A program made the position numbers and the translations under genes. The notes beneath the pieces are model-generated. The model had not been told where the DNA came from and did not search any database. It saw only the letters and a program-made list of their open reading frames with translations. This document shows, piece by piece, positions 10,655-59,750 of a DNA stretch of 64,000 nt; position 1 is the stretch's first letter, and each line of letters begins with the position of its first letter. This stretch comes from Nageia nagi (Eukaryota; Plantae; Pinophyta): NCBI GenBank assembly GCA_050084985.1, contig JBITNC010000001.1:143716001-143780000 (forward strand). Reading direction: 5' to 3'.

Positions 10655-10699
10655 AAGAGTAAAAGTTTCTTATTGATCTCATCATTTTTACAATAATGA

Positions 10700-24300: not shown

Positions 24301-24311
24301 TCCTCCCCTAC
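24301..24311 (-). promoter_or_regulatory. Polypurine tract of element 3 (GTAGGGGAGGA)
   Basis: tcctcccctac directly adjacent to the 3' LTR start. Confidence 0.8.
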
Positions 24312-33540: not shown

Positions 33541-33549
33541 CTTATAAGC

Positions 33550-33830
33550 ATGTAGTTTTTCACCATTTTGCATGCATTTTTTTTTCATGGATTCCTAGTT
33601 TTTTTAATTGATTTGATTGGACTATTGTTGCCTTTTGTTGCATTCTATGAAACTATATTTGCATGATGTATATTATTAAAAAAATCATGGTATGTAGGTT
33701 TTCACCATTTTGCATGCATATTTTTTTTTATGGATTCCTAGTTTTTTTAATCGATTTGGTTGGACTACTACTGCTTTTTGTTGCATTCTATGAAACTGTA
33801 TTTGCATTATGCATATTGTCAATAACAATC
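33550..33830. repeat. 143-bp tandem duplication
   Basis: caccattttgcatgcat...gcattctatgaaact at 33561 and 33704. Confidence 0.85.
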
Positions 33831-36800
33831 ATGGGCCTATTGCATTCTTCCATATTTTTTGCATAAATTTCTATCAAGTTTCTCTTTTCTAATTGTGGGT
33901 TCTTTGATTTCTTTAGCTTATTCAATTATTCTTCATACCCCAAACTACAATCAAAGTTAGAGACCTGATAAAAAGACTACTACTTTCTTTGCACCCTATG
34001 TTTCCTAGACAGCTAGTAGGATCTAAAATTTTCTTTCTGATTAGATTCTTTTGATTAGTATTTTCCTTTGTTTTATGGCACGTACTTTTCTTTGATCTCT
34101 CTTCTTTTTTCTAATATTCAATGCTCTTGCCTCTATAAATGCAATCTTTGATGTATGTATAAAATTGTGATCTTTGGCATTATATATTGATAATATGTTT
34201 GATTATTCTCTTAAAAACTTATGGAACAAAGTTCAGATAGTATTTTTAGAATTTAATTCACAATGACATTGAAATGTCATAGAATTTTTAATCTACTTAT
34301 CCAAGATGTCGAACGAAAACAACTCTTTTCTTGCAAGGATTTAACTTGGATAAGAATACCATGCATCAAAGGAAATACAGATTGTCATTGTTGTCAACAA
34401 ACATTGATAGAAATGTTCAGTATTTGCATAAGTACTTTAAGTATGCATGAGTTTTGGTTTGATGCTCTATTGAAGATGACAATTTATGTAAAGATACAAA
34501 AAGCGTTAAGTGCTAAAATCCTCAAAGTGATCAAAATCCATAAGTGTGTTTGTCATATCGACATGATGTAAATGAGTTTGTTTTATGTTAACAAGTGTGG
34601 ATGCAACGTTGGAATGATCGGTTGCTTTGTTTGTGCTTTGGTGGAGGTGTATGTGCATAATTGGCTGTGTCAAACTGATTTGAATTGTCATTTTGCAAGA
34701 GGTCCTTTGTACAACTCGCGAGGAATTACATCTTGAAATTAATACTAGAGGTATATCAAAGTACATTAAAATTATGTGTTCAATTTCATCGCAATCAGAG
34801 TTGAGAGAAAAAAGTTGTTACTTTCAGAAAATGAATTTGAATTACTTTTTCCAATTTTTGACAATTTTGTGGGACAGCCATAAAATGCCAAAAATGTTGA
34901 TCAAATATAAGTTTTTTTCAAAATGTGATATTGTTTCATCTTTAGATTACAAAAATAAACAAGTTTTCATTTTAGAGTGTCGCGATTTGAGATCCTTAAG
35001 TACGAGTAACTATAGATTGTTAATTCTTTGAATGTTAAGTGTTTGAAGGAATGTCTTTGAAATTAATGTTGGAGCCTACTTTGTCAGAGATACAGTAAGC
35101 AATTCGTGATGAGTTAAAGGCTAAAATTTTTAGTTAAGGTATTCAGATGTATCATGAATATGTGTATAAAATTTTGGTCCAATCTGACACCCGAGCACGA
35201 AACGGCAGCAATTGCAAAATGCTAACTTATCAACTTTTCTAGTTTTTTTTTCCAGTTTTAGCGTGCAAAACTGTTCGACGAAATTTGCATGAGAAAAATG
35301 ATTTTTCTTATTATGACATAACGGAGCTACAAATTGTTTAATAAAATTTCACTTTGAGAATTGAAGAGAAGGCATGAGAATTGCTTGATTCAACGCCTCT
35401 TTGGGAAGCTTTTGGTGGTTGTGAGATGTTCAATTAATGAGCGATAGATTTGAGATGTGAACTGTTTGACAAAATGCTTCTTCATATCTTTTAGTTCAGT
35501 GATCAGCAGTAAGGTAAATTTGAATTGATTGTAGAAATATCCTTCAATTCTCCATTACTATAAATTTCTTAGAGTATCGATTGATAATTCAGATTACCAT
35601 AGTTGTTGTGTATATGTGTCGGTGTATGTGGTAGCTTGGAGAAGGCATGCGAATGGTATGTTGTAAGTTGTAGTTCATACATGAGTTTAAGATTACCGTA
35701 ACTATCCTTCTTTGAATAGGATTCACCATATATAGGGGCACCATCAAGAACAAATACAAAAAGGAGATATTTCCCAACTGATTGAACCATGTACTGTTTG
35801 CACAACATACAAATACGAAATCGAGTGTGTCACTTTTTTTTTTGTTATTTCAATCTTGTAAAAACTAAATGCATTAAACATGCCTCATTGAATTGTTTAA
35901 TTCCATAAGTAGAGAGTTGGCCGCCTCGCTAAAAAAATGAACTTAAGACATGCTACAATGTTTGATCATGAAAATACCATTTTGCTGACTTCAATAACTT
36001 TTATCTTAAATATATTGTATATAATAGAAGATTTACAAATTGCACAATCATTTCCTCCAGACTTCAAATAAATTGACATTGCTTTTCCATTACACAATTG
36101 TTCCAGTTTGGTACTGTTTGAACTTCGAAGTATGTTGTCTTCACTTTACACTTAAAGAAAAGTTGTCAGTGTATCTTTCACTAAGACTAGAACTGGAAAG
36201 TGATACAATTTAGGTATAAGAAAGTTTGTCAAATACCACCAGCATTCAGAAGTTTTTGGCATCTTGATTTTTATGACTTCACTGAATTCTTTGTTGTAAA
36301 CTCATATCTTCTCCAACCAGCTTGTTATTTAATATCAAGATAAGTATATGATGGTGAACTGGTGACTAGGCAATACAAATTTGTAAAGAATTATGGAGGA
36401 TCAATAAAAACTCACTCATGTGCACAAGCTTGTTATTTGTTTAGGTTCAAGGACAAAAATGTACACAAGACATATTTAGCTTCTTCGGTCATATGAATTT
36501 AGAATACATCTACAGTTTTCATGCACTCTCATAAATCATTTTTGCTTATAAAAAAAAGTGTATAAATATATTTATTTGGTGTAAATCAAAATAGATATTT
36601 AATTGCTAAAATGTGGAAAGTATGTTGAATTTGCTGGTAAGGAAGTTGATACAATTCCTTGCTAGAAGGCATATTTAGAGAGCTTAAGAATGAATGTTAC
36701 TTTATGCTAAACTTTTTCATATGTAAGCTGCTAAATTTGAAAATTCTCCTTAATTCAAGTCTCTGAAAATATAATTGAAAATTCTCCTTAATACAAGACA

Positions 36801-37009
36801 TATAATTACATTGAAGAAACTCTAACATTGTAAAAGAATAATCTACTACAATGATAGGAATTTCTCATAATAAAACCATGGTAGATAGGAGATACATCTA
36901 TATTACATGTGGAAAAAATACATGTCCATGTAAAACAAAAGTATGAATGAAGAAAAATATTTTTAAATTGAATTCTTTGATACAACATCAAGATTACAAT
37001 GTACAAAAC

Positions 37010-39330
37010 TACAAGTTATGAATCTATGAACATATATCATTTTATGGCCCCTTTTGCCATCAATGTAAAAATTATAGGGTTCTTTGTCACTGCAACTAAT
37101 TCCCTACGCTCAAACAAGGCGTCTCTCTTTTATTCATTATTCTTGAGTGCAGGAGGATTTATCCCCGTGGTTGGTCTAGGTTTAAGTTTTACACATAGTC
37201 TCATTTTCATTTCTTCTATATTGCTTTTTGGTTTGTTTGCACGATCATTTTTAGGAGAAGGCCTAAAACATCAAAAAATCCTAACATCATTATTGTATAA
37301 CATCAAAAGATATTTAACTAGGAAAAAACTAAAAATATTATTATTTAATAGTATGATATTAAATACATACCTAGTTTCTAAATCCTCCAAATTTGTGAAA
37401 GAAAATTCCACGATCAAAATCCTTTTTAGATCAATGTGACTTATTGAACCAACCTTGTAATTAATGATGTAGTCATGCACATGTGTCTCTATTAAAAATG
37501 TATCAAAGTAAGCTTTGGAACACTTCTTACCTCTATGTATTATAGTATAGGCTTGTTGATCATTTTTTTCCTCTTGCTTTCTCCTGCACTTTAGACTCAT
37601 CATCAAATCTCAATACATAACCTGCATAGAATTCCTCATCCAGTCCATGACCAAGGGTGTCAAAAATATAACAAACCATTTTTTCAAGTGTCAAAATGAT
37701 GAAATGGTTAGCACATGCAACTATGTAATACCTAACCTAATTTGATATTGCATCCCAGTTTTTTTCAAATGTCTTTTTATTTGATATTTTCTATTTTATC
37801 ATAATGCCCTTCGACTTTAGTAAGACCTATTTGTACTTCATAAAATCCATAGTCACATGATTTAACTTCTAATCTATGATTGAATCCAAATCAAAATGTC
37901 CATCTTCAAATTTAACTTTAAAGGATGGAATTTCTTTCAATCTCTTCAAATAGCCATATAACTAAAAACATAAAACTAAGGCAAGATTAACAAATGAAAT
38001 CTTACATTTGGAGGTCAACTTCATGGGCCTTTAATTCCAATAAACTAATCTCCCATAAGACATAGCTCTGAATGTCATCACCTCTATGGAAATGTGCCCT
38101 TCTCCAATTAGCTTAACATGGTATGTGCCAGTAGGATCATCATTCTATACAATCCTAGACCCAACTATCTCACCATCTAGATCACTTAAAAATACCTTTT
38201 TTAATTGTAAATGCACCTTGTGTCCCTTTCTGATGTGGAGACCCTTGTGTATTTCCTGAATCCTATGCATACAATGTATTATTGAAGTTCTAGTGTGAGA
38301 TAATTATGATGAGGTCTAATTTGAATTCATAATTATCAAAGAAAGTATAAATAAAAGAAATTAATTACCAAATGTTGATCCTTTGTAGTGGTCAAATTCA
38401 AATTTAGAATTACCAAATAAATTATAAATAAAATAAATATTTACCAAAGGCTAATCCTATGTCATGGTCTCTATTGATTGTAATTCATTCCCACTTGAAA
38501 AGCCAAATATATCCTTTGAAAAATTATGTACAATAAATGAAAAAAAAAAAAAGCATCCATAAAATCATAGACTCAAGTATGAAAGAAAATAGAATCTATA
38601 AGAAAACTACATCTATAAATCAATTACCTTCTCCTTCGATATCAAATCAATATGTCCCTTTCTAAACTCACATTTGATATGTTACAATCTTCTCTTGTTT
38701 CTACATTCCTCTCCTTTGTATTCCTCAAGCTTTATTTTTACTTAATCTTTTTCTTTCTTTGGTAATTTTTCCCAACCATGGACATCATGCTGAAAATATA
38801 ATCTTCCACCAACTCTATAGCATTTAATATTAAACTTTCTCCAAAGCATAGTCTTTATATCCTTTTTTTCTTCAAGATATTTATTTGGATTATATCTTAG
38901 TGGCTTAGGGATAGTGAGCCTCCTACCTCTTGGTAGATGAGAACTGGTTCAACACCTTCATGTTCTTGGCCCCTATGTTCGTTTAGCCTTTTATGATCAC
39001 CACATTAAATTCCATGATGTACTTTATCATAATAGCCTAACCAACACCAGTATTGTATCTTATCAACCTTCTTATTTGCTTCCCATCATCCTTCCACAAA
39101 GGCTATGTAAGTCCATTTAGGATCACGTACACTTTGCAACACGCTAAATTCCTCTTGTGTAATCTCTATTGCATCTTAAACAATTTCCTATATTGGAAAA
39201 TGCAAAATTAATAATATTCTAAATTAAACATTATAAAATAACAAACATATACATGTATTTCCACCAGACCACAAAATTGTATGTGAAGTATCTAGCACTT
39301 ACCATTATGAGCTAAGATCTTTAAAGAGAT
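37010..39330 (-). pseudogene. Decayed multi-exon gene inside the MULE, probably a TE accessory gene (weak resemblance to Transposase_23/DUF8039-type domains)
   Basis: Alternating purine-rich exon-like blocks and short AT-rich introns with GT/AG signals on - strand; peptides KVFLSDLDGEIVGSRIV*NDDPTGTYHVKLIGEGHISIEV (~38083-38200) and NLACCKVYVILNGLT*PLW (~39095-39152). Confidence 0.45.
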
Positions 39331-39537
39331 TCAATTTCCAAATGGAATTTTGACCAAGGTCAACCTTTTGTTAGTAGGAATCAAGTTAATAGACTACTGC
39401 TTAAGCTATCAAGTTTTGCTACTAGAAAGTTTCAATAGAAAAATCTTAGTAAAGGCCTGAATATAGTTTTAAATAATCTCAACTATTACCAATTCAATAA
39501 AAAAATGAATAATTATAGGAATTAGTTTTTCTAATAG

Positions 39538-40483
39538 GTTTCTTCCCACAAGGAAGAATAGATAATGATGGTGATTGGATAAAGAAATTAAAACATGCAT
39601 AAAACATGTAATCAAAAGCAAGGAAAACATTGTTAAGATTGAAAAATATTGTGAATATGGTACTAATCTACTTGGTCTTATGATGAATTCAAACAAAGAA
39701 ACACAAGGAAGGAAATCTGGCTAGGTAATAATGGAAAATAGTTAGTAAATGCCAATTGTTTGAAATATATAGATAGGTAACAATAATAAGTCTCTTAACA
39801 TGGACTCTTATCCTCCTAGCAATTCATCATAAATGGCATGAGCGAGGACATAGGGAGGTCTTGGAAGTATGTAGGGAAAATGACTTTATAAATGAAAAGA
39901 CTATAAAAAGACTAAATATTGTAAGATATGAACAACCATTCTTAACTAGGAATTTTTTTCTAGTAACATTCTAAAATATTTTTTATTTCCATAAAATTCT
40001 ACTAGAACTGGTTAAAACATAATTTAGGAATGAATACCTGATGAAGTTATGCAAGAGGCCATGTTTTAAAGCTATTGTTCTATTCATCAAAAATATAATG
40101 CATATGCTTCAATTAGTAGATGAAAATATATTGTATCCATGTTGTTGTAGGTTGGGATGATGTTAAATGATTCCTTGAGATTTTATCCTCCATTACTAGT
40201 AATAAACTGAGAGGCATATAAGCCAATGAAGCTTGGAAGGCTCTCAATTCCTATGAGTACCAAGATTGAGATTCCAATCTTTTCAATGTAAATTGAACTA
40301 CCTTTTTGAGGAACTAATGTGCATGAGTTCAATCCAAAGTGGTTTGGGCAAATAATCGTAAAAGTTGCCAAGCATCCATTAGCATTCATGCCTTTTAGAT
40401 TGGGCCCAAGGACCTACATTAGATAAAACTTTACACTACTAAAGGCCAAAATATTATTGATCATGATTCTTCAATGGTTTTGC
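39538..40483 (+). pseudogene. Captured cytochrome P450 fragment, CYP72 clan (CYP734A/CYP709/CYP72A-like): last two exons plus the intron between them
   Basis: Exon 39538-39920: FLPTRKNR**W*LDKEIK..YGTNLLGLMM..SLLTWTLILLAIHHKWHERGHREVLEVC..RLNI. GT-AG intron 39921-40150. Exon from 40151: VGMMLNDSLRFYPP (ExxR), MKLGRLSIP, HEFNPKWF (PERF), KHPLAFMPFRLGPRTYIR*NF (decayed heme motif, Cys lost), ILQWF. Confidence 0.93.
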
Positions 40484-40764
40484 TGGGGTTTTATTTTTTT
40501 TATGTGGTTTTAATTTTCTAGGCTATTAGTTTTGATTTCCAAAGATAAACTAAAACCCTATATCAAGAATAGGGAAAAAAATGAACTCAAAATTCATACT
40601 TTAAAAATCACATATAAAAGTCTAAACTCTAAAAAAATGTCTGCAAATAAAGATTATGAGTTTGAAAATACCTGATGGAATTGGATAATTTGGTATTGGG
40701 ATCTTGTTGTGGGTAGGAGTTCCTCATGGCAACACCATCTAGGATGACTTGTAAAGAAATCTGG

Positions 40765-41755
40765 TATATGATTATAATTTTTATTAGAAATTGCATACAT
40801 GCCTTGAATGTGTTTGCATACATGTCTTGAATCTGACCAATGATCTATTTAATATTTTTTCATGATATATACACCCATGATTTAATATCCATTTATCATA
40901 GCATATACACCCATAATATATCAACGCATATATGCCCATAACATATCAAAGCATATACACCCATGATATATTTAACCTTAACATTTTAAAATTTTAAGTT
41001 CAACATATATGTCCGAGATATATCAACCACTATATGCCCACAATATATTCTACCTCAAAAAATTTGAAATTTTTATGCTAAGAAACCATATTTCAAGCAT
41101 ATACACCCATAATATATTGAGCCTTAAAATCTTGAAATTTTAAATTAACATATATGCCCTTGATATATCAACTACCATATATGCCCCTCATATAGTATAA
41201 AACATGAAGGTGATTTCTTAAAATATATTAAAACATGTATGCCCATAATATATTGAAATATAAAATTTTGAAATATTAAGTTTAGCATATACGCCCATTA
41301 CATCCTACACTTCAAAAAATTTGAATTTTTTTATATACAATCATATACATCGGTAGTATATCAAATCATATACACCCATAATATATTAAGCCTTAAAATA
41401 TTGAAATTTTAAGTTTAACATATATGCCTTTGATATATCAACTACTATACACCCATTGTATATTACACCTCAAAATTTTAGAATTTAATGGTTGGCATAT
41501 ATGCCCATAACATATCTAGGTCATATACGTCCATGGTATATTGGCTAAGTAGCTGAGCGGAGGAAAGGGGCTATGAAGCAAGGAGGATTTTCATATATGA
41601 CCATACTATATTTTTCCATATATGCCCAACATATAGTCTAGTGGAGTGGAGGAATTAGATAGAGGATGAAGGTGGTGAAATGCATATACACCCAACATAT
41701 ATTGTTATATAATATGGGCATATATGCTGAATTTGGAGGGAGGATAGCTTTCCCC
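40765..41755 (-). repeat. Right TIR (~1 kb)
   Basis: Inverted match to the left TIR; ends ...GGATAGCTTTCCCC. Confidence 0.9.
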
Positions 41756-42590
41756 AAATTTTATTGGGGTGATAAACACAAATTCATTAATTAGGCATAA
41801 ACTTATCCTAGTATAAATAAATTATTTTAGCATGTGGGTTGAAGAAATACCTTATAAGAATGTGAATCAAGATTTGGTGATTGAATTTCACCAAAGATTA
41901 ATCATCAAATTCATAATTCTACAAAATATTATTTTAGATAATGGCCCAATCTTCTTGGGTGAAAATTTTTCTCATTTCATTTTTGACTATAGAATTTTTT
42001 TAAAAAAATATCATTTAATTATTACACACAAAGTAATGGATTGGTTGAGTCGACAAGAAAGAATCTAATCAGAATAATTAAAAGACTTATACAAATGAAT
42101 CAAAGGAAATGGAACACAAAGTTGGATCATGCACTATAGAAAAATAGGATCAATGTAAATAATGTAATTAAAACTTCTCTCTATGCTCTAGTATATAAGA
42201 AAAGACCAATGCTACATATTCACCTAAAATTTCTCGCTATGAAGATATTGCAAGAAATGGATGATCTGACCATGGAACCACTGCAAATAAGGATGAATGA
42301 ATTTATCAAATTGGAATAAGATTAAGAATAAGCTTATCATACTTTCTAATAAAGTAGTGATTTGTTAAGAAGAAATCATATTGGGTCTCTTTCTAGGAAG
42401 GATATTTCATTCTTAATTTGGATGAGGATCATGCAAACCCTAGGAAATATGTAAAGTTTCATTCTTGTTGGAGCAGGCCATATGTGATCATGGAGGAACT
42501 AGAAAATAACACATATAAACTTAAATACCTAGCTAGGTATCAAGATCTAATGATTCCTATCAATGGGATTCATATAAATTATTACTAAGC
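41756..42590 (+). pseudogene. Integrase core and C-terminus of element 4 (continuation after the MULE)
   Basis: NFIGVIN, WVEEIP, NIILDNGPIF, YYTQSNGLVES, KTSLYALVY, WSRPYVI (GPY), IPINGIHINYY. Confidence 0.9.
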
Positions 42591-43060
42591 TATTTGAAAA
42601 TTCAAGCAATAAATAATTATAAATAAATGTATATAGAGTGTATATTTTTAATGCATTTAATGTGGTAGGTATTGTAAATAGTTCTAATCGGCTTTAATAT
42701 TCAAATGATTTGAATATTATCTCAAGATGTGAACTATACTTCCTAGTCCTTACAAATCAATATAATGGCTTTTTCATTTCGTGAGTCAATGATCCTATCC
42801 ATTTTTCATGATATGTGGCAAAAAATTAACTTAGACATGTTTTCCCATGCAACAACTAATACTTAGTTGGGTTTCCTTTTTCTTGTTACTCAATATTGCT
42901 AAAACTACCTAAATATTCTAAGAAGAGTTGTAGAGTATCATACTGAAATAATGCATTTATAAAGAAACCAAATATTGTAAAGGGGATTCTCAAAAAATAT
43001 CATGGCTCAAAAGATTATTGTACAATTACAAGAGATAGAAGCATTGCAACAAAACAAATC

Positions 43061-46000
43061 ATGAGAGAGGCATATTTGGCTAAGGTGATGGTAGAGTTGG
43101 TGAAGAAGCATAATGACTATAAGAAAGAGGCATTTGGTAATATATTTACATGGAGATATGCAAAAATAAAAAGCTTTGATACTTGGAGAAGCAACCTATA
43201 TAGGATCTTGCTCACTATAGATGATAGAATTAAAAATAAAAGGACTAAATAACATGGATCAATTTACATAGTGGAGTTAAGTTTGGCCTATTATATTTTC
43301 ATGATATTTCATGTACCTAATCTAATCATAAATATGGTGAGGAGGAAAAAGTAGTAAAGAACCTACAATAATGGTATTCAATAAATGTGAAAAAAGATAT
43401 TTGTAGATTATTCCTTTATAGGCATAGATAGAACTTTCATAGTTCCCCAACATTTGTATGAAAGGAAATTTAAAACTAATGAACCTCAAGGATAAAAAGA
43501 AAATATATGATTAATAAGAAAGTAAAGTTCTATAATTCATTAACTTTGAGTTTTTGGATCTCCAAGATAAGCTGCAATAAGAATAGGAGATGGAAAATTC
43601 GATAATTCATGGATTAGGGAGGTCATTTCTATCAATTATGTAGTACTCAATTATGAGTCAAAAATATGGGTAGAATCTATAATTATTTTAGTTATAAGAG
43701 TGATGGTGCTACATCAAATAAAATCTCAATGGTAATAATATATATCAAACCACATCTCTAGGAAATTGGACAAAGTAAAGAAAGGTGAAAACTTTAGATA
43801 CTCCTCTTTCCTTTTTTAACTAATTGTACACCAAAATTAAGAGTGGTTCTTGAATATCCCATTAGATTACCCACTTTTATTAGAAGTGTTTTAACTCAGA
43901 ATAGACATCATAAATCAAATGATGTGCCACTATAGCAGCTCATATTATGACTTTATGGAACATTTTGTAGAACTTGCCATGAGGGAACTTAGTAGGGAAG
44001 ACCTACCAAGGCTAACAAACAAATGTAAATGTAAGTTATAAGATAAAGGGAATAAGATGGGAGATTGATATTTTATGAGGATAAGAACTATGATTATCAT
44101 GTATGGCTTTCTACACATTCCTCTCATTTTTCCCAAATATGTTTCCAAGAAGCTATTTGTAGCAGAATTTGTTTTGAAATTTGATACAACTACAATGAAT
44201 TTTCAAGTCAGGGGTAGACATAGAAGTTTGAAAAAGTATCCATTACTTATGTACCATATCACTATGGATACATATGTCTAACATTTGGCTATGCATAGAT
44301 TCGTGAAGAAATAATTTCATATACAAGAGATAAACATAACATGACCCTTACGAACCACTTAGAATAAAGGCAAAATGTTGAAGGATCAGCCTAAAGGGAT
44401 CTAATTCATACATGAATTTGGGACTTATTTAGAGACATTTAGAAATTTGAATGAGAAGCAGGTATAGGAAGGCCTAGATTTTGACTTTGCTCTAACTATA
44501 GAAAGTCTTTCCTTTTTTAACTAATTGTACACCAAAATTAGGAGTGGTTCTTGAATATCCCATTAGATTACCCACTTTTATTAGAAGTGTTTTAACTCAG
44601 AATAGACATTGTAAATCAAATGATGTGCCACTATAGTAGCTCTTATTATGACTTTATGGAATATTTTGTAGAACTTGACATGAGGGAACTTAGTAGGGAA
44701 GACCTACCAAGGCTACCAAACAAATCTAAATGTATGTTATAAGATAAAGGGAATAATATGGGAGATTGATATTTTATGAGGATAAGAACTATGATTATCA
44801 TGTCTGGTTTTTTACACATTCCTCTCATTTTTCCCAAATATGCTTCCAAGAAGCTATTTGTAGTAGAATTTGCTTTGAAATTTGATACAATTGAAATGAA
44901 TTTTCAAGTTAGCGGTAGACATAGAAGTTTGAAAAAGTATCCATTAGTTGTGTTCCATATCACTATTGATACATATGTCTAACATTTGGCTATGCATAGA
45001 TTCATGAAGAAATAATTTCAATTACAAGAGATAAACATAACATGACCCTTATGACCCACTTAGAATAAGGGCAAAAATGTTGAAGGATCAGCCTAAAGGG
45101 ATCTCATTCATACATGAATTTGGGACTTATTTAGAGACATTTAGAAATTTGAATGAGAAGCAAGTAGAGGAAGGCCTAGAATGTGACTTTGCTTTAAGTA
45201 TAGAAAGTCTTTCCCTTTTTAACTAATTGTACACCAAAATTAGGAGTGGTTCTTGAATATCCCATTAGATTACCCACTTTTATTAGAAGTGTTTTAACTC
45301 AAAATAGACATCATAAATCAAATGATGTGCCACTATAGCAGCTCATATTATGACTTTATGGAATATTTTGTAGAACTTGCCATGAGGGAACTTAGTAAGG
45401 AAGACCTACCAAGGCCAACAAACAAATGTAAATGTATGTTATAAGATAAAGGGAATAAGATGGGAGATTGAAATTTTATGAGGATAAGAAATATGATTAT
45501 CATGTATGGATTTATACACATTCCTCTCATCTTTCCCAAATATGTTTCCAAGAAGCTATTTGTTCTAGAATTTGCTTTGAAATTTGATACAATTGAAATG
45601 AATTTTCAAGTCAAGGGTAGACATAGAAGTTTGACAAAGTATCCATTAGTTGTGTTCCATATCACTATGGATACATATGTCTAACATTTGGCTATGCATA
45701 GATTCGTGAAGAAATAATTTCATATACAAGAGATAAACATAACATGACCCTTACGAACCACTTAGAATAAAGGCAAAATGTTGAAGGATCAGCCTAAAGG
45801 GATCTAATTCATACATGAATTTGGGACTTATTTAGAGACATTTAGAAATTTGAATGAGAAGCAGGTATAGGAAGGCCTAGATTGTGACTTTGCTCTAACT
45901 ATAGAAAGTCTTTCCTTTTTTAACTAATTGTACACCAAAATTAGGAGTGGTTCTTGAATATCCCATTAGATTACCCACTTTTATTAGAAGTGTTTTAACT

Positions 46001-49000
46001 CAGAATAGACATTGTAAATCAAATGATGTGCCACTATAGTAGCTCTTATTATGACTTTATGGAATATTTTGTAGAACTTGACATGAGGGAACTTAGTAGG
46101 GAAGACCTACCAAGGCTACCAAACAAATCTAAATGTATGTTATAAGATAAAGGGAATAATATGGGAGATTGATATTTTATGAGGATAAGAACTATGATTA
46201 TCATGTCTGGTTTTTTACACATTCCTCTCATTTTTCCCAAATATGTTTCCAAGAAGCTATTTGTAGTAGAATTTGCTTTGAAATTTGATACAATTGAAAT
46301 GAATTTTCAAGTCAGCGGTAGACATAGAAGTTTGAAAAAGTATCCATTAGTTGTGTTCCATATCACTATTGATACATATGTCTAACATTTGGCTATGCAT
46401 AGATTCATGAAGCAATAATTTCAATTACAAGAGATAAACATAACATGACCCTTATGACCCACTTAGAATAAGGCAAAAATGTTGAAGGATCAGCCTAAAG
46501 GGATCTCATTCATACATGAATTTGGGACTTATTTAGAGACATTTAGAAATTTGAATGAGAAGCAAGTAGAGGAAGGCCTAGAATGTGACTTTGCTTTAAG
46601 TATAGAAAGTCTTTCCCTTTTTAACTAATTGTACACCAAAATTAGGAGTGGTTCTTGAATATCCCATTAGATTTTCCACTTTTATTAGAAGTGTTTTAAC
46701 TCAGAATAGACATCGTAAATCAAATGATGTGCCACTATAGCAGCTCATATTATGACTTTATGGAATATTTTGTAGAACTTGCTATGAGGGAACTTAGTAG
46801 GGAAGACCTACCAAGGCTAACAATCAAATGTAAATGTATGTTATAAGATAAAGGGAATAAGATGGGAGATTGAAATTTTATGAGGATAAGAAATATGCTT
46901 ATCATGTATGGATTTATACACATTCCTCTCATTTTTCCCAAATATGTTTCCAAGAAGCTATTTGTTCTAGAATTTGCTTTGAAATTTGATACAATTGAAA
47001 TGAATTTTCAAGTCAAGGCTAGACATAGAAGTTTGACAAAGTATCCATTAGTTGTGTTCCATATCACTATGGATACATATGTCTAACATTTGGCTATGCA
47101 TAGATTCGTGAAGAAATAATTTCAATTACAAGAGATAAACATAACATGACCCTTATGACCCACTTAAAATAAAGGCAAAAATGTTGAAGGATCAACCTAA
47201 AGGGATCTCATTCATACATGAATTTGGGACTTATTTACAGACACTTAGAAATTTGAATGAGAAGCAAGTAGAGGAAGGCCTAGATTGTGACTTTGCTCTA
47301 AGTATAGAAGTCTTTCCTTTTCTAACTAATTGTACACCAAAATTAGGAGTGGTTCTTGAATATCCCATTAGATTACCCACTTTTATTAGAAGTGTTTTAA
47401 CTCAGAATAGACATCATAAATCAAATGATGTGCCACTATAGCAGCTCATATTATGACTTTATGGAATATTTTGTAGAACTTGCCATGAGGGAACTTATTA
47501 GGGAAGACCTACCAAGGCTAACAAACAAATGTAAATGTATGTTATAAGATAAAGAGAATAAGATGGGAGATTGATATTTTATGAGGATAAGAACTATAAT
47601 TATCATGTATGGCTTTCTACATGTTCCTCTCATTTTTCTCAAATATGTTTCCAAGAAGCTATTTGTAGTAGAATTTACTTTGACATTTGATACAATTGAA
47701 ATGAATTTTCAAGTCAGGGGTAGACATAGAAGTTTGAAAAAGTATCCATTAGTTGTGTTCCATATCACTATGGATACATATGTCTAACATTTGGTTATGC
47801 ATAGATTCATGAAGAAATAATTTCAATTACAAGAGATAAACATAACATGACCCTTATGACCCACTTAGAATAAAGGCAAAAATGTTGAACGATCAGCCTA
47901 AAGGGATCTCATTCATACATGAAATTGGGACTTATTTAGAGACATTTAAAATTTGAATGAGAAGTAGGTAGATGAAGGCCTAGATTGTGACTTTGCTCTA
48001 AGAAATAGAAAGTCTTTCATTTTTTAACTAATTGTACACCAAAATTAGGAGTGGTCCATGAATATACCATTAGATTATCCACTTTTATTAGAAGTGTTTT
48101 AACTCAGAATAGACATCATAAATCAAATGATGTGCCACTATAGCAGCTCATATAATGACTTGACGTAATATTTTGTAGAACTTGCCATGAGGGAACTTAG
48201 TAGGGAAGACCTACCAAGGCTAACAAACAAATGTAAATGTATGTTATAAGATAAAGGGAATAAGATGGGAGATTGAAATTTTATGAGGATAAGAAATATG
48301 ATTATCATGTATGGATTTATACACATTCCTCTCATTTTTCCCAAATATGTTTCCAAGAAGCTATTTGTTCTAGAATTTGCTTTGAAATTTGATACAATTG
48401 AAATGAATTTTCAAGTCAAGGGTAGACATAGAAGTTTGACAAAGTATCCATTAGTTGTGTTCCATATCACTATGGATACATATGTCTAACATTTTGCTAT
48501 GCATAGATTCGTGAAGAAATAATTTCAATTAAAAGAGATAAACATAACATGACCCTTATGACCCACTTAGAATAAAGGCAAAAATGTTGAAGGATCAACC
48601 TAAAGGATCTCATTCATATATGAATTTGGGACCTATTTAGAGACATTTAGAAATTTCAATGAGAAGCAAGTATAGGAAGGCCTAGATTGTGACTTTGCTC
48701 TAAGTATAGAAAGCCTTTCCTTTTTTAACTAATTGTACACCAAAATTAGGAGTGGTTCTTGAATATCCCATTAGACTACCCATTTTTATTAGAAGTGTTT
48801 TAACTTAGAATAGACATTATAATTCAAATGGTGTGCCACTATAGCAGCTCATATGATGACTTTATGGAATATTTTGTAGAACTTGCCATGAGGGAACTTA
48901 GTAGGGAAGACCTACCAAGGCTAACAAATGAATGTAAATGTATGATATAAGATAAAGGGAATAAGATGGGAGAATGATATTTTATGAGGATAAGAACTAT

Positions 49001-52000
49001 GATTATCATGTATGGCTTTCTACACATTCCTCTCATTTTTCCCAAATATGTTCCCAAGAAGCTATTTGTAATAGAATTTGCTTTGAAATTTGATACAACT
49101 AAAATGAATTTTCAAGTCAGGGGTAGACATAGAAGTTTGAAAAAGTATCCATTAGTTATGTTCCATATCACTATGGATACATATGTCTAACATTTGCCTA
49201 TGCATAGATTCATGAAGGAATAATTTCATATACAAGAAATAAACATAACATGACCCTTACGACCCACTTAGACTAAGGGAAAAAATGTTGAAGGATCAGC
49301 CTAAAGGGATCTCATTCATACATGAATTTGGGACTTATTTAGAGACATTTAGAAATTTGAATGAGAAGCAGGTATAGGAAGGCCTAGATTGTGACTTTGC
49401 TCTAAGTATAGAAAGTCTTTCCTTTTTTAACTAATTGTACACCAAAATTAGGAGTGGTTCTTGAATATCCCATTAGATTACCCACTTTTATTACAAGTGT
49501 TTTAACTCAAAATAGACATCGTAAATCAAATGATGTGCCACTATAGCAGCTCATATAATGACTTTATGGAATATTTTGTAGAACTTGCCATGAGGGAACT
49601 TAGTAGGGAAGACCTACCAAGGATAACAAACGAATGTAAATGTATGTTATAAGATAAAGGGAATAAGATGGGAGATTGATAATTTATGAGGATAAGAACT
49701 ATGATTATCATGTATGGCTTTCTACACAGTCCTCTCATTTTTTCCAAATATGTTTCCAAGAAGCTATTTGTAGTAGAATTTGCTTTGAAATTTGATACAA
49801 TTGAAATGAATTTTCAAGTAAGGGGTAGACATAGAAGTTTGAAAAGTTTCCATTAGTTGTGTTCCATATCACTATGGATACATATGTCTAACATTTTGCT
49901 GTGCATAGATTCGTGAAGAAATAATTTCATATGCAAGAGATAAACATAACATGACCATTATGACCCACTTAGAATAAAGGCAAAAATGTTGAAGGATCAA
50001 CCTAAAGGGATCTCATTCATACATGAATTTGGGACTTATTTAGAGACATTTAGAAATTTGAATGAGAAGATAGGTAGAGAAAGGCCTAGATTGTGACTTT
50101 GCTCTAACTATAGAAAGTCTTTCCTTTTTAGCTAATTGTACACCAAAATTAGGAGTGGTTCTTGAATATCCCATTAGATTACCCACTTTTATTATAAGTG
50201 TTTTAACTCTGAATAGACATCATAAATCAAATGATGTGCCACTATAGCAGCTCATATTATGACTTTATGGAATATTTTGTAGAACTTGCAATGAGGGAAC
50301 TTAGTAGGGAAGACCTACCAAGGCTAACAAACAAATGTAAACTTATGTTATAATATAAAGGGAATAAGATGGGAGATTGATATTTTATGAGGACAAGAAC
50401 TATGACTATCATGTATGCCTTTCTACACATTCCTCTCATTTTTCCCAAATATGTTTCCAAGAAGCTAAATGTAGTACAATTTGCTTTGAAATTTGATACA
50501 ATTGAAATGAATTTTCAAGTCAGGGGTAGACATAGAAATTTGAAAAAGTATCCATTAGTTGTGTTCCATATCATTATGGATACATATGGCTAACATTTGG
50601 CTATGCATAGATTGATGAACAAATAATTTCAATTACAAGAGATAAACATAACATGACCCTTATGACCCACTTAGAATAAAGGGGAAAATATTGAAGGATC
50701 AACCTAACAGGATCTTATTCATACATGAATTTGGGGCTTATTTAGATACATTTAGAAATATGAATGAGAAGCAGGTAGAGGAAGGCCTAGAGTGTGACTT
50801 TGCTCTAAGTATTGAAAGTCTTTCCTTTTTTAAGTAACTCTACACCAAAATTAGGAGTGGTTCTTGAATATCCCATTAGATTACCCACTTTTATTAGAAG
50901 TGTTTTAACTCAGAATATACATCATAAATCAAATGATGTGCACTATAGCAGCTCATATAATGACTTTATGGAATATTTTGTAGAACTTGCCATGAGGGAA
51001 CTTAGTATGGAAGACCTACCAAGGCTAAAAAACAAATGTAAATGTATGTTATAAGATAAAGGGAATAAGATGGGAGATTCATATTTTATGGAGTATAACA
51101 ACTATGATTATCATGTATGGATTTCTACACATTCCTCTCATTTTTTCCCAAATATGTTTCCAAGAAGCTATTTGTTCTAGAATTTCCTTTGAAATTTGAT
51201 ACAATTGAAATGAATTTTCAAGTCAAGGGTAGACAAAGAAGTTTGAAAAAGTATCCATTAGTTGTGTTACATATCACTATGGATACATATGTCTAACATT
51301 TGGCTATGCATAGATTCATGAAGAAATAATTTCAATTACAAGAGATAAACATAACATGACCCTTATGACCCACTTAGAATAAAGGCAAAAATGTTGAAGG
51401 ATCTGCCTAAAGGGATCTCATTCATACATGAATTTGGGGCTTATTTGGAGACATTTAGAAATTTGAATGAGAAGTAGGTAGAGGAAGGCCTAGATAGTGA
51501 CTTTGCTCTAAGTATAGAAAGTCTTTCCTTTTTTAACTAATTGTACACCAAAATTAGGAGTGGTTCTTGAATATCCCATTAGATTACCCATTTTTATTAG
51601 AAGTCTTTTAACTAAGAATAGACATCATGTATCAAATGATATGCCACTATAGCAGCTCATAAGTGTTTTACCTAAAAATAGACATCATAAATCAATGACG
51701 GCCACTATAACAACCATATTATGACTTTATGGAATATTTTGTAGAACTTGTAAATGTATGTTATAAGATAAAGGAAATAAGATGGGAGATTGATATTTTA
51801 TGAGGATAAGAACTATGATTATTATGTATGGCTTTCTACACATTCCTCTAATTTTTCCCAAATATGTTTCCAAGAAGCTATTTGTAGTAGAATTTGCTTT
51901 GAAATTTGATACAATTGAAATGAATTTTCATGTCAGGGGTAGACATAGAAGTTTGAAAAAGTATCCATTAGTTGTGTTCCATATCACTATGGATACATAT

Positions 52001-55000
52001 GTCTAACATTTGGCTATGCATAGATTGATGAACAAATAATTTCAATTACAAGAGATAAACATAACATGACCCTTATGACCCACTTAGAATAAAGGGGAAA
52101 ATATTGAAGGATCAACCTAACAGGATCTTATTCATACATGAATTTGGGCTTATTTAGATACATTTAGAAATATGAATGAGAAGCAGGTAGAGGAAGGCCT
52201 AGAGTGTGACTTTGCTCTAAGTATTGAAAGTCTTTCCTTTTTTAAGTAACTCTACACCAAAATTAGGAGTGGTTCTTGAATATCCCATTAGATTACCCAC
52301 TTTTATTAGAAGTGTTTTAACTCAGAATATACATCATAAATCAAATGATGTGCACTATAGCAGCTCATATAATGACTTTATGGAATATTTTGTAGAACTT
52401 GCCATGAGGGAACTTAGTATGGAAGACCTACCAAGGCTAAAAAACAAATGTAAATGTATGTTATAAGATAAAGGGAATAAGATGGGAGATTCATATTTTA
52501 TGAGTATAACAACTATGATTATCATGTATGGATTTCTACACATTCCTCTCATTTTTCCCAAATATGTTTCCAAGAAGCTATTTGTTCTAGAATTTCCTTT
52601 GAAATTTGATACAATTGAAATGAATTTTCAAGTCAAGGGTAGACAAAGAAGTTTGAAAAAGTATCCATTAGTTGTGTTACATATCACTATGGATACATAT
52701 GTCTAACATTTGGCTATGCATAGATTCATGAAGAAATAATTTCAATTACAAGAGATAAACATAACATGACCCTTATGACCCACTTAGAATAAAGGCAAAA
52801 ATGTTGAAGGATCTGCCTAAAGGGATCTCATTCATACATGAATTTGGGGCTTATTTGGAGACATTTAGAAATTTGAATGAGAAGTAGGTAGAGGAAGGCC
52901 TAGATAGTGACTTTGCTCTAAGTATAGAAAGTCTTTCCTTTTTTAACTAATTGTACACCAAAATTAGGAGTGGTTCTTGAATATCCCATTAGATTACCCA
53001 TTTTTATTAGAAGTCTTTTAACTAAGAATAGACATCATGTATCAAATGATATGCCACTATAGCAGCTCATAAGTGTTTTACCTAAAAATAGACATCATAA
53101 ATCAAATGACGTGCCACTATAACAACTCATATTATGACTTTATGGAATATTTTGTAGAACTTGTAAATGTATGTTATAAGATAAAGGAAATAAGATGGGA
53201 GATTGATATTTTATGAGGATAAGAACTATGATTATTATGTATGGCTTTCTACACATTCCTCTAATTTTTCCCAAATATGTTTCCAAGAAGCTATTTGTAG
53301 TAGAATTTGCTTTGAAATTTGATACAATTGAAATGAATTTTCATGTCAGGGGTAGACATAGAAGTTTGAAAAAGTATCCATTAGTTGTGTTCCATATCAC
53401 TATGGATACATATGTCTAACATTTGGCTATGCATAGATTTGTGAAGAAATAATTTCAATTACAAGAGATAAACATAATATGACCCTTATGACCTACTTAG
53501 ATTAAAGGCAAAAATGTTGAAGGATCAGCCTAAATGGATCTCATTCATACATGAATTTGGGGCTTATTTAGAGACATTTACAAATTTGAATAAGAAGCAA
53601 GTAAAGGAAGGCCTAGATTGTGACTTTTCACTAAGTATAGAAAGTCTTTCCTTTTCTAACTAATTGTACACCAAAATTAGGAGTGGTTCTTGAATATCCC
53701 ATTAGATTACCCACTTTTATTAGAAGTGTTTTAACTCAGAATAGACATCATAAATCAAATGATGTGCCACTATAGCAGCTCATATTATGACTTTATGGAA
53801 TATTTTGTAGAACTTGCCATGAGGGAACTTATTAGGGAAGACCTACCAAGGCTAACAAACAAATGTAAATGTATGTTATAAGATAAAGGGAATAATATGG
53901 GAGATTGATATTTTATGGGGATAAGAACTATGATAATCATGTATGGCTTCCTATACACTCCTCTCATTTTTCCCAAATATGTTTCCAAGAAGCTATTTGT
54001 AGAAGAATTTTCTTTGAAATTTGATACAATTGAAATGAATTTTCAAGTCAGGGGTAGACATAGAAGTTTGAAAAAGTATCCATTAGTTGTGTTCCATATC
54101 ATTATGAATACATATGTCTAACATTTTGCTATGCATAGATTTGTGAAGAAATAATTTCAATTATAAGAGATAAACATAACATGACCATTATGACCCACTT
54201 AGAATAAAGGCAATAATGTTGAAGGATCAACCTAAAGGGATCTCATTCACACATGAATTTGGGACTTATTTAGAGACATTTAGAAATTTGAATGAGAAGC
54301 AGGTAGAGGAAGGCCTAGATTGTGATATTGCTTTAAGTATAGAAAGTTTTTCCTTTTTTAACTAATTATACACCAAAATTAGGAGTGGTTCTTGAATATC
54401 CCATTAGATTACCCACTTTTATTAGAAGTGCTTTAACTTAGAATAGACATCATAAATCAAATGATGTGCCACTATAGCAGCTCATATTATGACTTTATGG
54501 AATATTTTGTAGAACTTGCCATGAGGGAACTTAGTAGGGAAGACCTACCAAGGCTAACAAACAAATGTAAATGTTTGTTATAAGATAAAGGGAATAAGAT
54601 GGGAGATTGATATTTTATGGGGATAAGAACTATGATTATCATGTATGGCTTCCTACACATTCCTCTCAATTTTCCCAAATATGTTTCCAAGAAGCTATTT
54701 GTAGTAGAATTTGCTTTGAAATTTGATACAATTGAAATGAATTTTCAAGTTAAGGGTAGACATAAAAGTTTGAAAAAGTATCCATTAGTTGTGTTCCATA
54801 TCACTATGGATACATATGTCTAACATTTGGCTATGCATAGATTCATGAAGAAATAATTTCAATTACAAGAGATAAACATAACATGACCCTTATGACCCAC
54901 TTAGAATAAAGGGAAAAATGTTGAAGGATCTACCTAATAGGATCTCATTCATAAATGAATTTGGGGCTTATTTAGAGACACTTAGAAATATGAATGAGAA

Positions 55001-58000
55001 GTAGGTAGAGGAAGGCCTAGATTGTGACTTTGCTCTAAGTATTGAAAGTCTTTCCTTTTTTAAGTAATTGTACAATAAAATTGGGAGTGGTTCTTGAATA
55101 TCCCATTAGATTACCCACTTTTATTAGAAGTGTTTAAACTCAGAATAGACATCATATATCAAATGATGTGCCACTATAGCAGCTAATAAGTGTTTTAACT
55201 TAGAATAGACATCATAAATCAAATGATGTGCCATTATAGCAGCTCATATTATGACTTTATGGAATATTTTGTAGAACTTGCCATGAGGGAACTTAGTAGG
55301 GAAGACCTACCAATGCTACCAAACAAATCTAAATGTATGTTATAAGATAAAGGGAATAATATGGGAGATTGATATTTTATGAGGATAAGAACTATGATTA
55401 TCATGTATGGCTTTCTACACATTCCTCTCATTTTTTCCCCAATATGTTTAAAGAAGCTATTTGTAGTAAAATTTGCTTTGAAATTTGATACAATTGAAAT
55501 GAATTTTCAAGTCAGGGGTAGACATAGAAGTTTCAAAAAGTATCCATTAGATGTGTTCCATATCGCTATGAATACATATGTCTAACATTTGGCTATGCAT
55601 AGATTCATGAAGAAATAATTTCAATTACAAGAAATAAACATAACATGACCCTTATGACCCACTTAGAATAAAGGCAAAAATGTTGAAGGATCAGCCTAGA
55701 GGGATCTCATTCAAACATGCATTTGGGACTTATTTAGAGACATTTAGAAATTTGAATGAGAAGCAAGTAGAGGAAGGCCTAGATCATGACTTTGCTCTAA
55801 GTATAGAAAGTCTTTCCTTTTTTAACTAATTGTACACCAAAATTAGGAGTGGTTCTTGAATATCCCATTAGATTAGCCACTTTTATTAGAAGTGTTTTAA
55901 CTCAAAATAGACATCATAAATCAAATGATGTGCCACTATAGCAGCTCATATTACGACTTTATGGAATATTTTGTAGAACTTGCCATGAGGGAACTTAGTA
56001 GGGAAGACCTACCAAGGCTAACAAACAAATGTAAATGTATGTTATATTATAAAGGGAATAAGATGGGAGATTGATAATTTATGAGGATAAGAACTATGAT
56101 TATCATGTATGGCTTTCTACACAGTCCTCTCATTTTTCTCAAATATGTTTCCAAGAAGCTATTTGTAGTAGAATTTGCTTCGAAATTTGATACTATTGAA
56201 ATGAATTTTCAAGTAAGGGGTAGACATAGAAGTTTGAAAAAGTTTCCATTAGTTGTGTTGCATATCACTATGGATACATATGTCTAACATTTGGCTATGC
56301 ATAGATTCATGAAGAAATAATTTCAATTACAAGAGATAAACATAACATGACCCTTATGACCCACTTAAAATAAAGGCAAAAATGTTGAAGGATCAACCTA
56401 AAGGGATCTCATTCATACATGAATTTGGGACTTATTTAGAGACATTTAGAAATTTGAATGAGAAGCAAGTAGAGGAAGGCCTAGATTGTGACTTTGCTCT
56501 AAGTACAGAAAGTCTTTCCTTTTTTAACTAATTGTACACCAAAATTAGGAGTGGTTCTTGAATATCCCATTAGATTACCCACTTTTATTAGAAGTGTTTT
56601 AACTCAAAATAGACATCATAAATCAAATGATGTGCCACTATAGTAGCTCATGTTACGAGTTTATGGAATATTTTGTAGAACTTGCCATGAGGGAACTTAG
56701 TAGGGAAGACCTACCAAGGCTAACAAACAAATGTAAATGTATGTTATAAGATAAAGGGAATAAGATGGGAAATTGATATTTTATGAGGATAACAACTATG
56801 ATTATCCTATATGCCTTTCTACACATTCCTCTCATTTTTCCCAAATATGTTTCCAAGAAGCTATTTGTAGTAGAATTTGCTTTGAAATTTGATACAATTG
56901 AAATGAATTTTCAAGTCATGGGTAGACATAGAAGTTTGAAAAAGTATCCATTAGTTGTGTTCCATATCATTATGGATACATATGTCTAACATTTGGCTAT
57001 GCATGGATTCATGAAGGAATAATTTCAATTACAAGAGATAAACATAACATGACCCTTATGACCCACTTAAAATAAAGGCAAAAATGTTGAAGGATCAGCC
57101 TAAAGGGATGTCATTTATACATGAATTTGGGACTTATTTAGAGACATTTAGAAATTTGAATGAGAAGCAAGTAGAGGAAGGCCTAGATTGTGACTTTGCT
57201 CTAAGTATAGAATGTCTAGATGAACATGGAAGCCTATCCAAATAATTTGGATATGAAAAAGAAAGAGTGTAATCTCACCCATAATTTAATAAATGAATTG
57301 TAGGATAAATATCATTTTTTTGATACAAAGATAGTATATTTTACATAATTCAATTTTGAAATAATGGAGAAATCTATTAGCCAAGGGTGCATGAAATTTG
57401 GAATATTTAGGGGTGATAAAGAATATTAGTCATCTTATGAAGATGATCATATGCCAAAATTGTAAAAAGCCTTGAGAAGTTTGAATGCTATAGAGTCTAA
57501 GTTAACCTCTTCTTAGTACCCTACTCAATCTACATAAGAGAAGTTCATTCCCTCAAAAAAGAGATAAAAAGCATATAAAATCCTTCTCAAACCAAGATAT
57601 TTGAGGTGATAAAAATTAAAATAGAAGAGGGAATGGATAAATTTGTCAAACAAGTAGGTACCATACTAGAAGCTAATAATTATCCCAGGAAAAGACTAAG
57701 GTCTCTTAGAGAGAAAGAAGAAAAAAGGAAATCTACCTGTACTTGATCATAATATAGTGCTTCCAAAGTGCCTATTAATCTTGATGAATAAGAAATAGCA
57801 ATCCAAGAAGGCTAAGAACCTCATGGAGAGATAATTTTATCTCCTACTTGGGAGGCTACAACTATGCCCTTATAATTGACTTAGGCATATCAAAAACCTC
57901 CTATTCCACCTCATCAAACTAGTTATTCATCATAATTTACTACAAATTTTAGCTAATTATTTATAAGAGGAATGACCAAAGGTTGCATAAAAGGGGAACA

Positions 58001-59750
58001 ACCTTTACACAAAATACAAAGTGTACTAATACAACCTATCAAAAAGCTAATAGTTCAAACCTCAATTCAATCTCAATAGCTTGAGGAATTGCAAAAGGTG
58101 AGATAGTTACAAATAATGGATCAATCAAATGTAGATGTGCCTTTAGAGATATAAAAAATACAAATAGATAAGTCAAAGGATTAACAAAAAAAAGCACATA
58201 GTCAACAAAACCTAAAGAATATAGAAGTCCCATAATAATAAGGGAATCTTAGACTCCATAGCCCAGATGGACAAGGAACCTCCAAACTCCTCATTAAAAC
58301 CCTCAATGGGTACCCTAGAGAAATAAAAAAAAAGGAGAGAAAAAGATTCAATACATGATTGGGGATTCAAGAAAATAACTAATTACTCCCTCTTCATCCT
58401 TGTGTAAGATAGTGACCTTATCATCATTTACCTCAATATAAGTATAACATATTTTTAATGTAAAATGTCCCAGCAAAATACTTGGGCTCAACTTTGAAGA
58501 CAACTCCATAGGCTCATAGAGCATGTAGGGTAATGAGTGTAGTATAGCTAGAGTCTAGAAAATTAAAAGTAGGAGTTGTCCCAATTATTGGCACATCATT
58601 GGAAAAGGAAATGGCCTTTATGTTAATATATTTTCATTTGGACAAGACCTTAACATATGATTTAAAATTATTTAGGATCAATACTATAGAATCCATTGGG
58701 AAAGGATTTGAAAAAATTGAATGCAAGGTTGAGAATATAGAAAATAAAAAGTATGATCTTGAGGCAACCATCAATAAACAATAAAAAATAATTAAGACAT
58801 CAAAAATAGAAAAGAAAATTTGAGATTCAAAATGGAAGTTGTAGTGACAGATCATGAGAAAAAGGAAAAATCATTGAAGGAGTTGGAAAGGGTTAAAAAG
58901 GAAATGAATCAACTAAATAAGATGTTACAAGAATTTGAAAAATAACAAGATGGGAAATTTAAATAGGATATTGTAACCTAAGAGAAATAAAATCATAAAT
59001 TAATCTAAAATAACATGAATATGATTACTATTGCAATAAATACCAAAAAAAAATAATAATAAATCATATAGTGGTATAATAACCAAACCTAGTAAAAGTG
59101 AAAGGATTATAGGAGAACATAGAAGTAGGAAACATAAATTACAAAACCTTTCTACAAACTTATTAGGCCATTATCATATTTATCCTTAATAAAGAAAAGC
59201 AGATAGTAGATTAGTTGGGGATAAGTAAAGAAGAGAAAATTTATGTTGTCTTTTCTTGAAATATATAGGAATTATCCAAGAGGATAAGTGATATAAAGTG
59301 GATATCATTTGTAAATGATATGATAGAGGATATAATAATTTAGCTTTAAATGGATATATCTTTCATAATGATATAGTTGGAATACTTGAAGGAGAAAATT
59401 GTGCCACCATTATGGGATGAGCAAGATGAGCCTGTTAGTATCATATATTGGAAAATATGTCTCATGCTTATATTGATATAAAGGAATCACTAGAAAAATC
59501 AATGTGAGAAATTGATAATTTAACTTTTCTTAACAAAATAGTTTAACACATCATTGTTAAGTTCCTAAATACAAGCAATATACAAACAAACTTAAATGAG
59601 TTGATAGTACATATGATATATGCTTCCACCATCTCGATATATGCAAGGGTAAACTTGGATAAAATATTGATTATGTATGAGCAAATGAGGAATATGGTGT
59701 TGAAAGAGCCTACATATCAATCTTGGATATCTACTTCAACATGATGAAGT
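43061..59750 (+). pseudogene. Long degenerate 3' accessory ORF of element 4, interrupted by tandem amplification of an internal 702-bp segment; Lys/Glu-rich, coiled-coil-like C-terminal part
   Basis: Coding-like frame runs into unit 1 (KGENFRYSSFLF) and out of unit 19 (KYRMSR..TWKPIQ); EKIECKVENIENKKYDLEATINKQ at ~58710-58780. Confidence 0.55.
43805..57217 (+). repeat. Tandem array (satellite) of 19 monomers of ~701-702 bp
   Basis: Unit starts ~43805, 44506, 45208, 45909, 46610, 47311, 48013, 48714, 49416, 50118, 50819, 51522, 52231, 52932, 53645, 54347, 55049, 55811, 56513; the same 67-68 aa ORFs recur at this period. Confidence 0.98.

Follow-up and report, generated by a model that had tools for sequence, protein, structure and literature searches.

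The closest described systems to the locus reported here are the maize tandem repeats CRM1TR and CRM4TR, which consist of long terminal repeat (LTR) plus untranslated region (UTR) sequence, were begun by illegitimate recombination, and were shaped by conversion (PMC3648361). That paper also reviews the potato centromeric repeats, the sobo repeat, and a 250-bp wheat/rye repeat similar to gag. The satellites derived from Ogre elements grow out of short sub-repeats located downstream of pol (PMC7004042). The same article cites the potato centromeric repeats (Gong 2012) together with a primate satellite that arose from a single-copy intron (Valeri 2018). Here, we describe a tandem array of 19 units of ~702 bp in a 64,000-nucleotide stretch of DNA from the conifer Nageia nagi (contig JBITNC010000001.1, positions 143,716,001 to 143,780,000 of the forward strand; this whole stretch is referred to below as the window, and positions are numbered within it). 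Very probably, the array arose where it now lies: one non-repetitive segment of 702 bp was duplicated in tandem and expanded to 19 units, with two dimer duplications following the main amplification.

Like CRM1TR and CRM4TR, the Nageia array consists of long-monomer repeats that are wholly retroelement-associated in sequence and present at no more than one or two loci, with a start thought to be illegitimate recombination and growth by recombination or conversion. Age would be a further likeness, at about a million years or more for both. In contrast, the maize monomers are built of LTR plus UTR sequence with matches in many family members, whereas the unit described here comes from unique sequence downstream of pol and has no family sister among the sequences found. 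The unamplified state of the very same locus, which is lacking in the maize cases, is also available. The Ogre-derived FabTR satellites of Lathyrus sativus (PMC7004042) resemble the array in lying downstream of a Ty3/gypsy gag-pol and in pol orientation. However, they have short monomers, which came from short tandem sub-repeats in every element copy and spread to long arrays elsewhere, whereas the array described here has a monomer of 702 bp, a non-repetitive progenitor, and a single known locus. As cited in the two papers, the potato (Gong 2012), primate intron (Valeri 2018), and wheat/rye repeats follow the same principle as this array, in that a genomic or retroelement segment that had not been tandem before was amplified in tandem, and for the primate satellite a between-species comparison likewise shows the unamplified state. 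Those repeats are large, cytologically visible satellites, in contrast to the 13.4 kb found here, for which there is no evidence of a centromeric or other role.

Scanning the whole window for k-mer offsets gave a peak at 701/702 bp that was confined to 43.8-57.2 kb. The longest period of Tandem Repeats Finder (TRF) is 500, so that program is blind to the array and the period was found by the k-mer script instead. When one unit was compared with the window by the Basic Local Alignment Search Tool (BLAST), 19 consecutive full units were recovered from 43805 to 57215/57217, and no further copy was detected in the window outside the array. These results bear out the 19 x 702-bp array that a preliminary description, made from the letters of the stretch, had placed at 43805-57217, with 19 being the count as assembled. 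The array, its units, its internal events, and its two junctions are as follows (a slash marks a boundary).

43805 to 57217, + strand: tandem array of 19 head-to-tail units of ~702 bp (k-mer offsets, BLAST, junction letters, unit alignment)
Starts of units u1 to u10: 43805, 44507, 45209, 45910, 46611, 47311, 48014, 48715, 49417, 50119
Starts of units u11 to u19: 50820, 51523, 52232, 52933, 53646, 54348, 55050, 55812, 56514
44507 to 47310, + strand: u2-u5, recent duplication of a two-unit block (u2/u4 99% alike, u3/u5 97% alike; tree)
50820 to 53645, + strand: u11-u14, second two-unit duplication (u11/u13 100% alike, u12/u14 97% alike)
55128 to 55248, + strand: 60-bp internal duplication in u17 (same duplication in u12 and u14; at 53011-53131 in u14)
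43793 to 43811, + strand: left junction, ...ACTCC/TCTTTCC (identical in the single-copy relative; spanned by record 9 of the X2 contigs)
57203 to 57225, + strand: right junction, ...GAATGT/CTAGATGAAC (single-copy relative, ...AAAAGT/GTGGATGAAC)

The units are 700-713 bp long, except for one of 762 bp, and show 92-96% pairwise identity overall. The array lies on the same purine-rich strand as pol and starts 1.2 kb beyond the pol end (~42585). It is entered at monomer phase 311 and left at phase 313, so that a whole number of units lies between the flanks; for a randomly truncated or inserted array, the chance of such a fit is ~1%. Because tail-to-head junctions were independently present in contigs of three other sequencing runs (X1, X2, and X3), the tandem order is no artefact of the assembly of the window.

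The unamplified form of the locus was found in other samples. Contigs of four public runs (X1 to X4) were aligned to window positions 41765-46000, and Joint Genome Institute (JGI) metagenome contigs were scanned with a 20-mer from the right flank of the array; all of these outside data are contigs. The scan yielded three true matches (L001, L003, and L004), and a further contig, L002, was rejected as a chance 20-mer match. L004 carries a single 702-nt unit, at L004 9290-9991, and aligns to the window in three segments.

Window 64000 back to 58058: 92.4% identity with L004
Window 58005 back to 56513: 91.3% identity with L004
Window 44506 back to 41367: 91.3% identity with L004

The last of these segments is unbroken across the boundary between the remnant of an integrase and the inverted end of a Mutator-like element inserted into it. 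These two neighbors of the array lie as follows.

41765 to 42585, + strand: integrase core and C-terminal SH3-like remnant of a Ty3/gypsy-type pol (motifs in translation; stop-free pieces at 41817-42585)
31894 to 41755, strand unassigned: Mutator-like element in the integrase (terminal inverted repeats of ~1 kb, 82% alike; 9-bp target-site duplication AAATTTTAT at 31885-31893 and 41756-41764)

The Mutator-like insertion is thus also present in the unamplified relative. L001 and L003 have junction letters identical to those of L004 and are colinear with one 702-nt unit at 91-92% identity. In the indoor metagenome X4, record 25 of the Logan contigs (10.5 kb) runs through the integrase core and the post-pol spacer into u1, of which it includes the first 354 nt; it then skips exactly two units to phase 358 of u3, reaches the end of u3, and finishes as a loose end that matches the right flank of the window. 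Because coverage skips exactly two units and then enters the right flank, this contig represents one unit between the same two flanks; it has a 16-nt insertion in common with L004. The one-unit state was therefore seen in four independent samples (L001, L003, L004, and X4), whose contigs are overall ~91-93% identical to the window locus, and the unamplified lineage is ~7-8% diverged from the window. TRF and a repeat search of the single-copy unit and its flanks detected no internal tandem repeat, so the progenitor segment is non-repetitive and shows none of the pre-existing short post-pol sub-repeats from which Ogre/Tat-type seeding proceeds.

We take L004 to be the same locus in a diverged genome (an orthologue, a homeologue, or an old segmental duplicate) and not a sister retroelement, because two independent retroelement copies are very unlikely to have acquired the same transposon insertion. 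Single-copy forms with the same flanks, which the preliminary description had expected among sister retroelements, were accordingly found as the same locus in another lineage; no family sister carrying the unit was detected by protein-relative searches of unit and left-flank pieces or by the metagenome contig scan. The same description had proposed amplification in place from a single non-repetitive local segment, and a diverged form of the locus with exactly one 702-nt unit and colinear flanks supports that proposal. In sum, an origin in place is strongly supported: the junctions enclose whole units, and the relative carries one unit between colinear flanks, together with the shared Mutator-like insertion.

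Three side observations were made on these alignments. In the unamplified lineage, contigs often end at one place, ~110-125 nt into the part of the integrase that follows the Mutator-like element (L001:1 and the end of X4 record 25), and such recurrent contig ends are probably assembly breaks at repeats. L003 starts inside the unit (L003:1-185), and a second unit is possible in that sample. Finally, ~52 nt at window 58006-58057 have no counterpart in L004 or L003, reflecting either an insertion in the window lineage or a deletion in the relative.

The junctions of the array were compared between the two forms. Those quoted in the preliminary description are letter-perfect (left, ...TTTAGATACTCC/TCTTTCC; right, ...AAGTATAGAATGTCT/AGATGAAC), and every internal junction reads ...GAAAGT/CTTTCC. 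At the left junction, 30 nt are identical between the window and the single-copy form. Exactly at the right breakpoint, of the three bases that open the flank, two are not the same in the window and the relative, a mismatch with a chance of ~1.5% at ~7% divergence. From the sequence, these base changes are possibly a repair scar of the founding event. TCT stands at both array edges in the window, but this 3-nt microhomology is absent from the single-copy form, in which T alone is shared; because the right edge of that form reads ...AAAAGT/GTGGATG, only the T is certainly ancestral.

To place the amplification relative to the split between the lineages, all 19 units were compared with the single-copy unit as the outgroup over 688 gap-free columns. 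These columns contained 23 fixed differences and 10 more at which every unit differs from the outgroup. Each unit was ~3.1% different from the majority state, a figure that leaves out u12, u14, and u17 because of their internal rearrangements and for which majority states were used only to count differences. The maximum-likelihood tree was star-like (outgroup branch, 0.073; terminal branches, ~0.02-0.03). By these comparisons, all 19 units descend from a common ancestor that postdates the split from the relative. Divergence between units showed no increase with their separation in the array (Spearman −0.14, p = 0.14), which, together with the star-like tree, suggests amplification by a burst and not by slow stepwise growth. 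The 60-bp duplication in u12 and u14 is accompanied by a ~50-bp deletion just downstream, and the occurrence of this duplication in the non-adjacent units u12, u14, and u17 suggests conversion or exchange between distant units. The flanks differ by 6.8-7.9% between the lineages, and the units differ by 9.2% from the outgroup unit; by rough scaling, the burst would fall about half-way between the split and the present, with no absolute date put on it. Changes private to one to four units comprised 72 transitions and 95 transversions, compared to 337 and 276, respectively, among flank differences to the relative (Fisher p = 0.007). Candidate causes of this transversion excess and of the higher divergence of the units are mutagenic amplification, a regional rate difference, and assembly noise.

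These data are consistent with the following course of events. The starting point would have been a 702-bp segment lying 1.2 kb beyond what remains of the integrase of a long-dead Ty3/gypsy-type element. In the first step, the end of this segment may have been joined illegitimately to its start, the two sharing no more than 1-3 nt (T or TCT), and the right breakpoint may have kept a small scar of this join. Most units would then have arisen in a short burst, by rapid unequal sister-chromatid exchange, by break-induced replication, or through a rolling-circle intermediate. Later, two-unit blocks would have been duplicated twice (u2-u3 giving u4-u5, and u11-u12 giving u13-u14), and the 60-bp internal duplication now present in u12, u14, and u17 also presumably arose within the array. 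One variant of this course, which we consider rather unlikely, is that the amplification took place as one mutagenic burst, with an error-prone polymerase acting in, for example, break-induced or rolling-circle replication, so that much of the ~3% private divergence arose during the amplification itself. Such a burst is permitted by the ~30% excess divergence of the units, the transversion-richer private changes, and the two base changes at the right breakpoint.

Several points weigh against amplification in place from a single segment. The copy number of 19 comes from the assembly; absence and depth read from outside contigs are not firm; the relative may be an orthologue, a homeologue, or a duplicate of the locus; and the divergence of the units from the outgroup exceeds that of the flanks by ~30%, so that a simple clock fails. 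In addition, concerted evolution can make an old array look young. The array could then be ancestral, with the relative collapsed to one unit by unequal crossing-over and the window units made to look young by homogenisation. Unequal exchange would leave exactly one unit with unchanged flanks, as observed, gene conversion has been documented in such arrays (PMC3648361), and the start of L003 inside a unit could be an assembly break at a repeat. We nevertheless regard an ancestral array as improbable: (i) the relative carries one unit in each of its four independent samples; (ii) X4 has no tail-to-head junction contig; (iii) the 23 fixed differences from the outgroup occur in all 19 units, and the tree is a star with no nested old lineages; (iv) the segment is without internal repeats that would hint at an older array; and (v) the right breakpoint differs between the two forms, which is not expected from homologous collapse.

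Two other explanations concern the extent of the repeat. If the unit were part of a satellite spread through the genome, or of a repeated portion of the retroelement family, then the locus would be one of many arrays and not a birthplace. In the air metagenome X3, unit contigs do occur at depths of 2-7 while the left flank is uncovered, and the unit may outnumber its flank; a 19-copy unit, however, is expected to be easier to assemble than its flank. The unit depths in X1 are far under the level of a major satellite (soft evidence), the single-copy relative with colinear flanks shows that the unit is native at this locus, and protein or DNA relatives of the unit turned up nowhere else in the searches, all of which makes a genome-wide origin very improbable. 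It is hardly credible that the length of the array is an artefact in which an assembler over-expanded a few real units. The outside runs consist entirely of contigs and offer no spanning reads, but the 19 units are mutually distinct, with ~3% private differences each, and over-expansion would not create the two dimer pairs or the 60-bp duplication in three units. The tail-to-head junctions in three other runs point in the same direction.

The preferred reading, amplification in place, leaves the question of whether the array deserves the name satellite, which the preliminary description had given it. The head-to-tail order of the units agrees with that name, but the array is one 13.4-kb locus with low contig depth in a genome skim and no sign of other arrays (soft evidence), and the label is generous for such a locus. 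In X1, unit contigs had depths of 3-12, compared to 3.1 for the exact-match flank contig (contig depths being a soft guide), values that fit 19 diverged copies and not a major satellite. Most likely, the array is a neutral structural variant, a proto-satellite without a function of its own.

The array had also been placed inside an LTR retrotransposon, designated element 4 in the preliminary description. Same-strand pol remnants 1.2 kb upstream agree with this placement, but no LTR pair was found for the host element, even when the right flank and 4.3 kb of downstream sequence from L003 were included, and a position inside an LTR retrotransposon therefore stays a reasonable reading. The rest of the pol remnants lie on the far side of the Mutator-like element.

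30262 to 31767, + strand: reverse transcriptase (RT), RNase H, and integrase zinc-finger remnants upstream of the Mutator-like element (RVT_1, 22.6 bits, below cutoff; motifs in translation)

The RT piece occupies 30262-30919 and is followed by RNase H-like pieces and by the integrase zinc finger at 31582-31767. Better-preserved pieces in the relative match rve (23.2 bits) and SH3_Tf2-1 (19.7 bits), both below the Pfam cutoffs. The Ogre/Tat lineage of Ty3/gypsy elements has a second, archaeal-type RNase H between RNase H and integrase. Here, the ~330 codons between the RT YxDD-like motif and the integrase zinc finger leave little room, and the element is too decayed for a domain call. Because the Mutator-like insertion is common to L004, it predates the split between the lineages, and the host element was broken before the amplification. 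The stop codons are consistent with this order: 46 stop triplets occur in at least 17 of the 19 units, and 39 of the 46 are also present in the single-copy relative, so that the frames were closed before the split and hence before the amplification. The claim that stops common to most units place amplification after the death of the element is thereby upheld, both by these triplets and by the integrase-breaking insertion already present in the relative.

The proposed nature of the unit as an accessory open reading frame (ORF) or other coding segment was not supported: neither strand gave a Pfam or protein relative, ORF-likeness was marginal, and the frames were broken before the split. This is an absence of support and no proof of a non-coding origin. 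The regions flanking the array on either side are as follows.

42586 to 43804, + strand: left flank, from the pol end to the array (101-aa stop-free piece at 42947-43249, 84 aa stop-free in the relative; no relatives found)
57218 to 59200, + strand: right flank, with ORF-like, coiled-coil-like pieces (the relative keeps 105- and 138-aa pieces)

Among 30 natural stop-free pieces, taken from one unit, the two flanks, and the relative, none matched a Pfam family at threshold; sub-threshold matches were to RVT_1, rve, and SH3_Tf2-1, plus a touch to DUF6617 in the right flank. This last match, at 57579-57743, reaches the last 40, C-terminal positions of DUF6617 (15.6-15.8 bits; cutoff, 27). DUF6617 as a domain spanning the unit was rejected, since no unit piece matched it even at E up to 10, and a literature search found no mention of the family. 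A 98-aa unit piece across the internal junction had no phmmer match among 1.84 billion representative proteins, a search of limited sensitivity because each half is ~50 aa. No homologous proteins were found for a 90-aa minus-strand ORF of the unit or for the 101-aa left-flank piece, and the homologue search with the 138-aa downstream piece of the relative returned only its own metagenome gene call. Tested against dinucleotide shuffles, the whole post-pol region of the relative was modestly ORF-like on the + strand (coverage, p = 0.02; longest piece of 138 aa, p = 0.003), and the right flank drives this signal. The unit alone was not significantly ORF-like in the relative (p = 0.15) and marginally so in u6 (p = 0.013). 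A remnant post-pol ORF in the right flank is plausible; a remnant ORF in the unit itself is a guess.

Other retroelement remnants were noted in the window. A 3.4-kb direct repeat, 82% identical, occupies 20834-24301 and 26807-30170, with ~2.5 kb between the copies, and ends exactly where the RT remnants start; one possibility is that the two copies are LTRs and bound a non-autonomous element nested within the 5′ region of this pol. Just upstream of this repeat, at 20451-20621 on the + strand, lies an RNase H-like stop-free piece (...NNYFEYEALYLGLNQA...), which is probably from another element because it is out of order for the pol described above. RNase H-like and integrase-like pieces at the start of the window (199-1700, + strand) and a copia-type RT-like piece (10405-10704, − strand) are remnants of further retroelements.

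Most satellites are studied long after their birth, with the progenitor sequence and the first junction lost. At this locus, sequence still shows the founder junctions and, in a relative, the unamplified state, and it allows the amplification to be dated in relative terms and the internal events to be put in order. Nothing at the array indicates a function, a centromeric role, or spread to other loci. The class to which it belongs is already known, since origins from retroelement LTR/UTR sequence, from gag-like sequence, and from a single-copy intron have been documented; this array is a newly described and unusually legible case. It leaves the accepted picture unchanged and is useful as a worked example of non-repetitive DNA giving rise to a long-monomer array.

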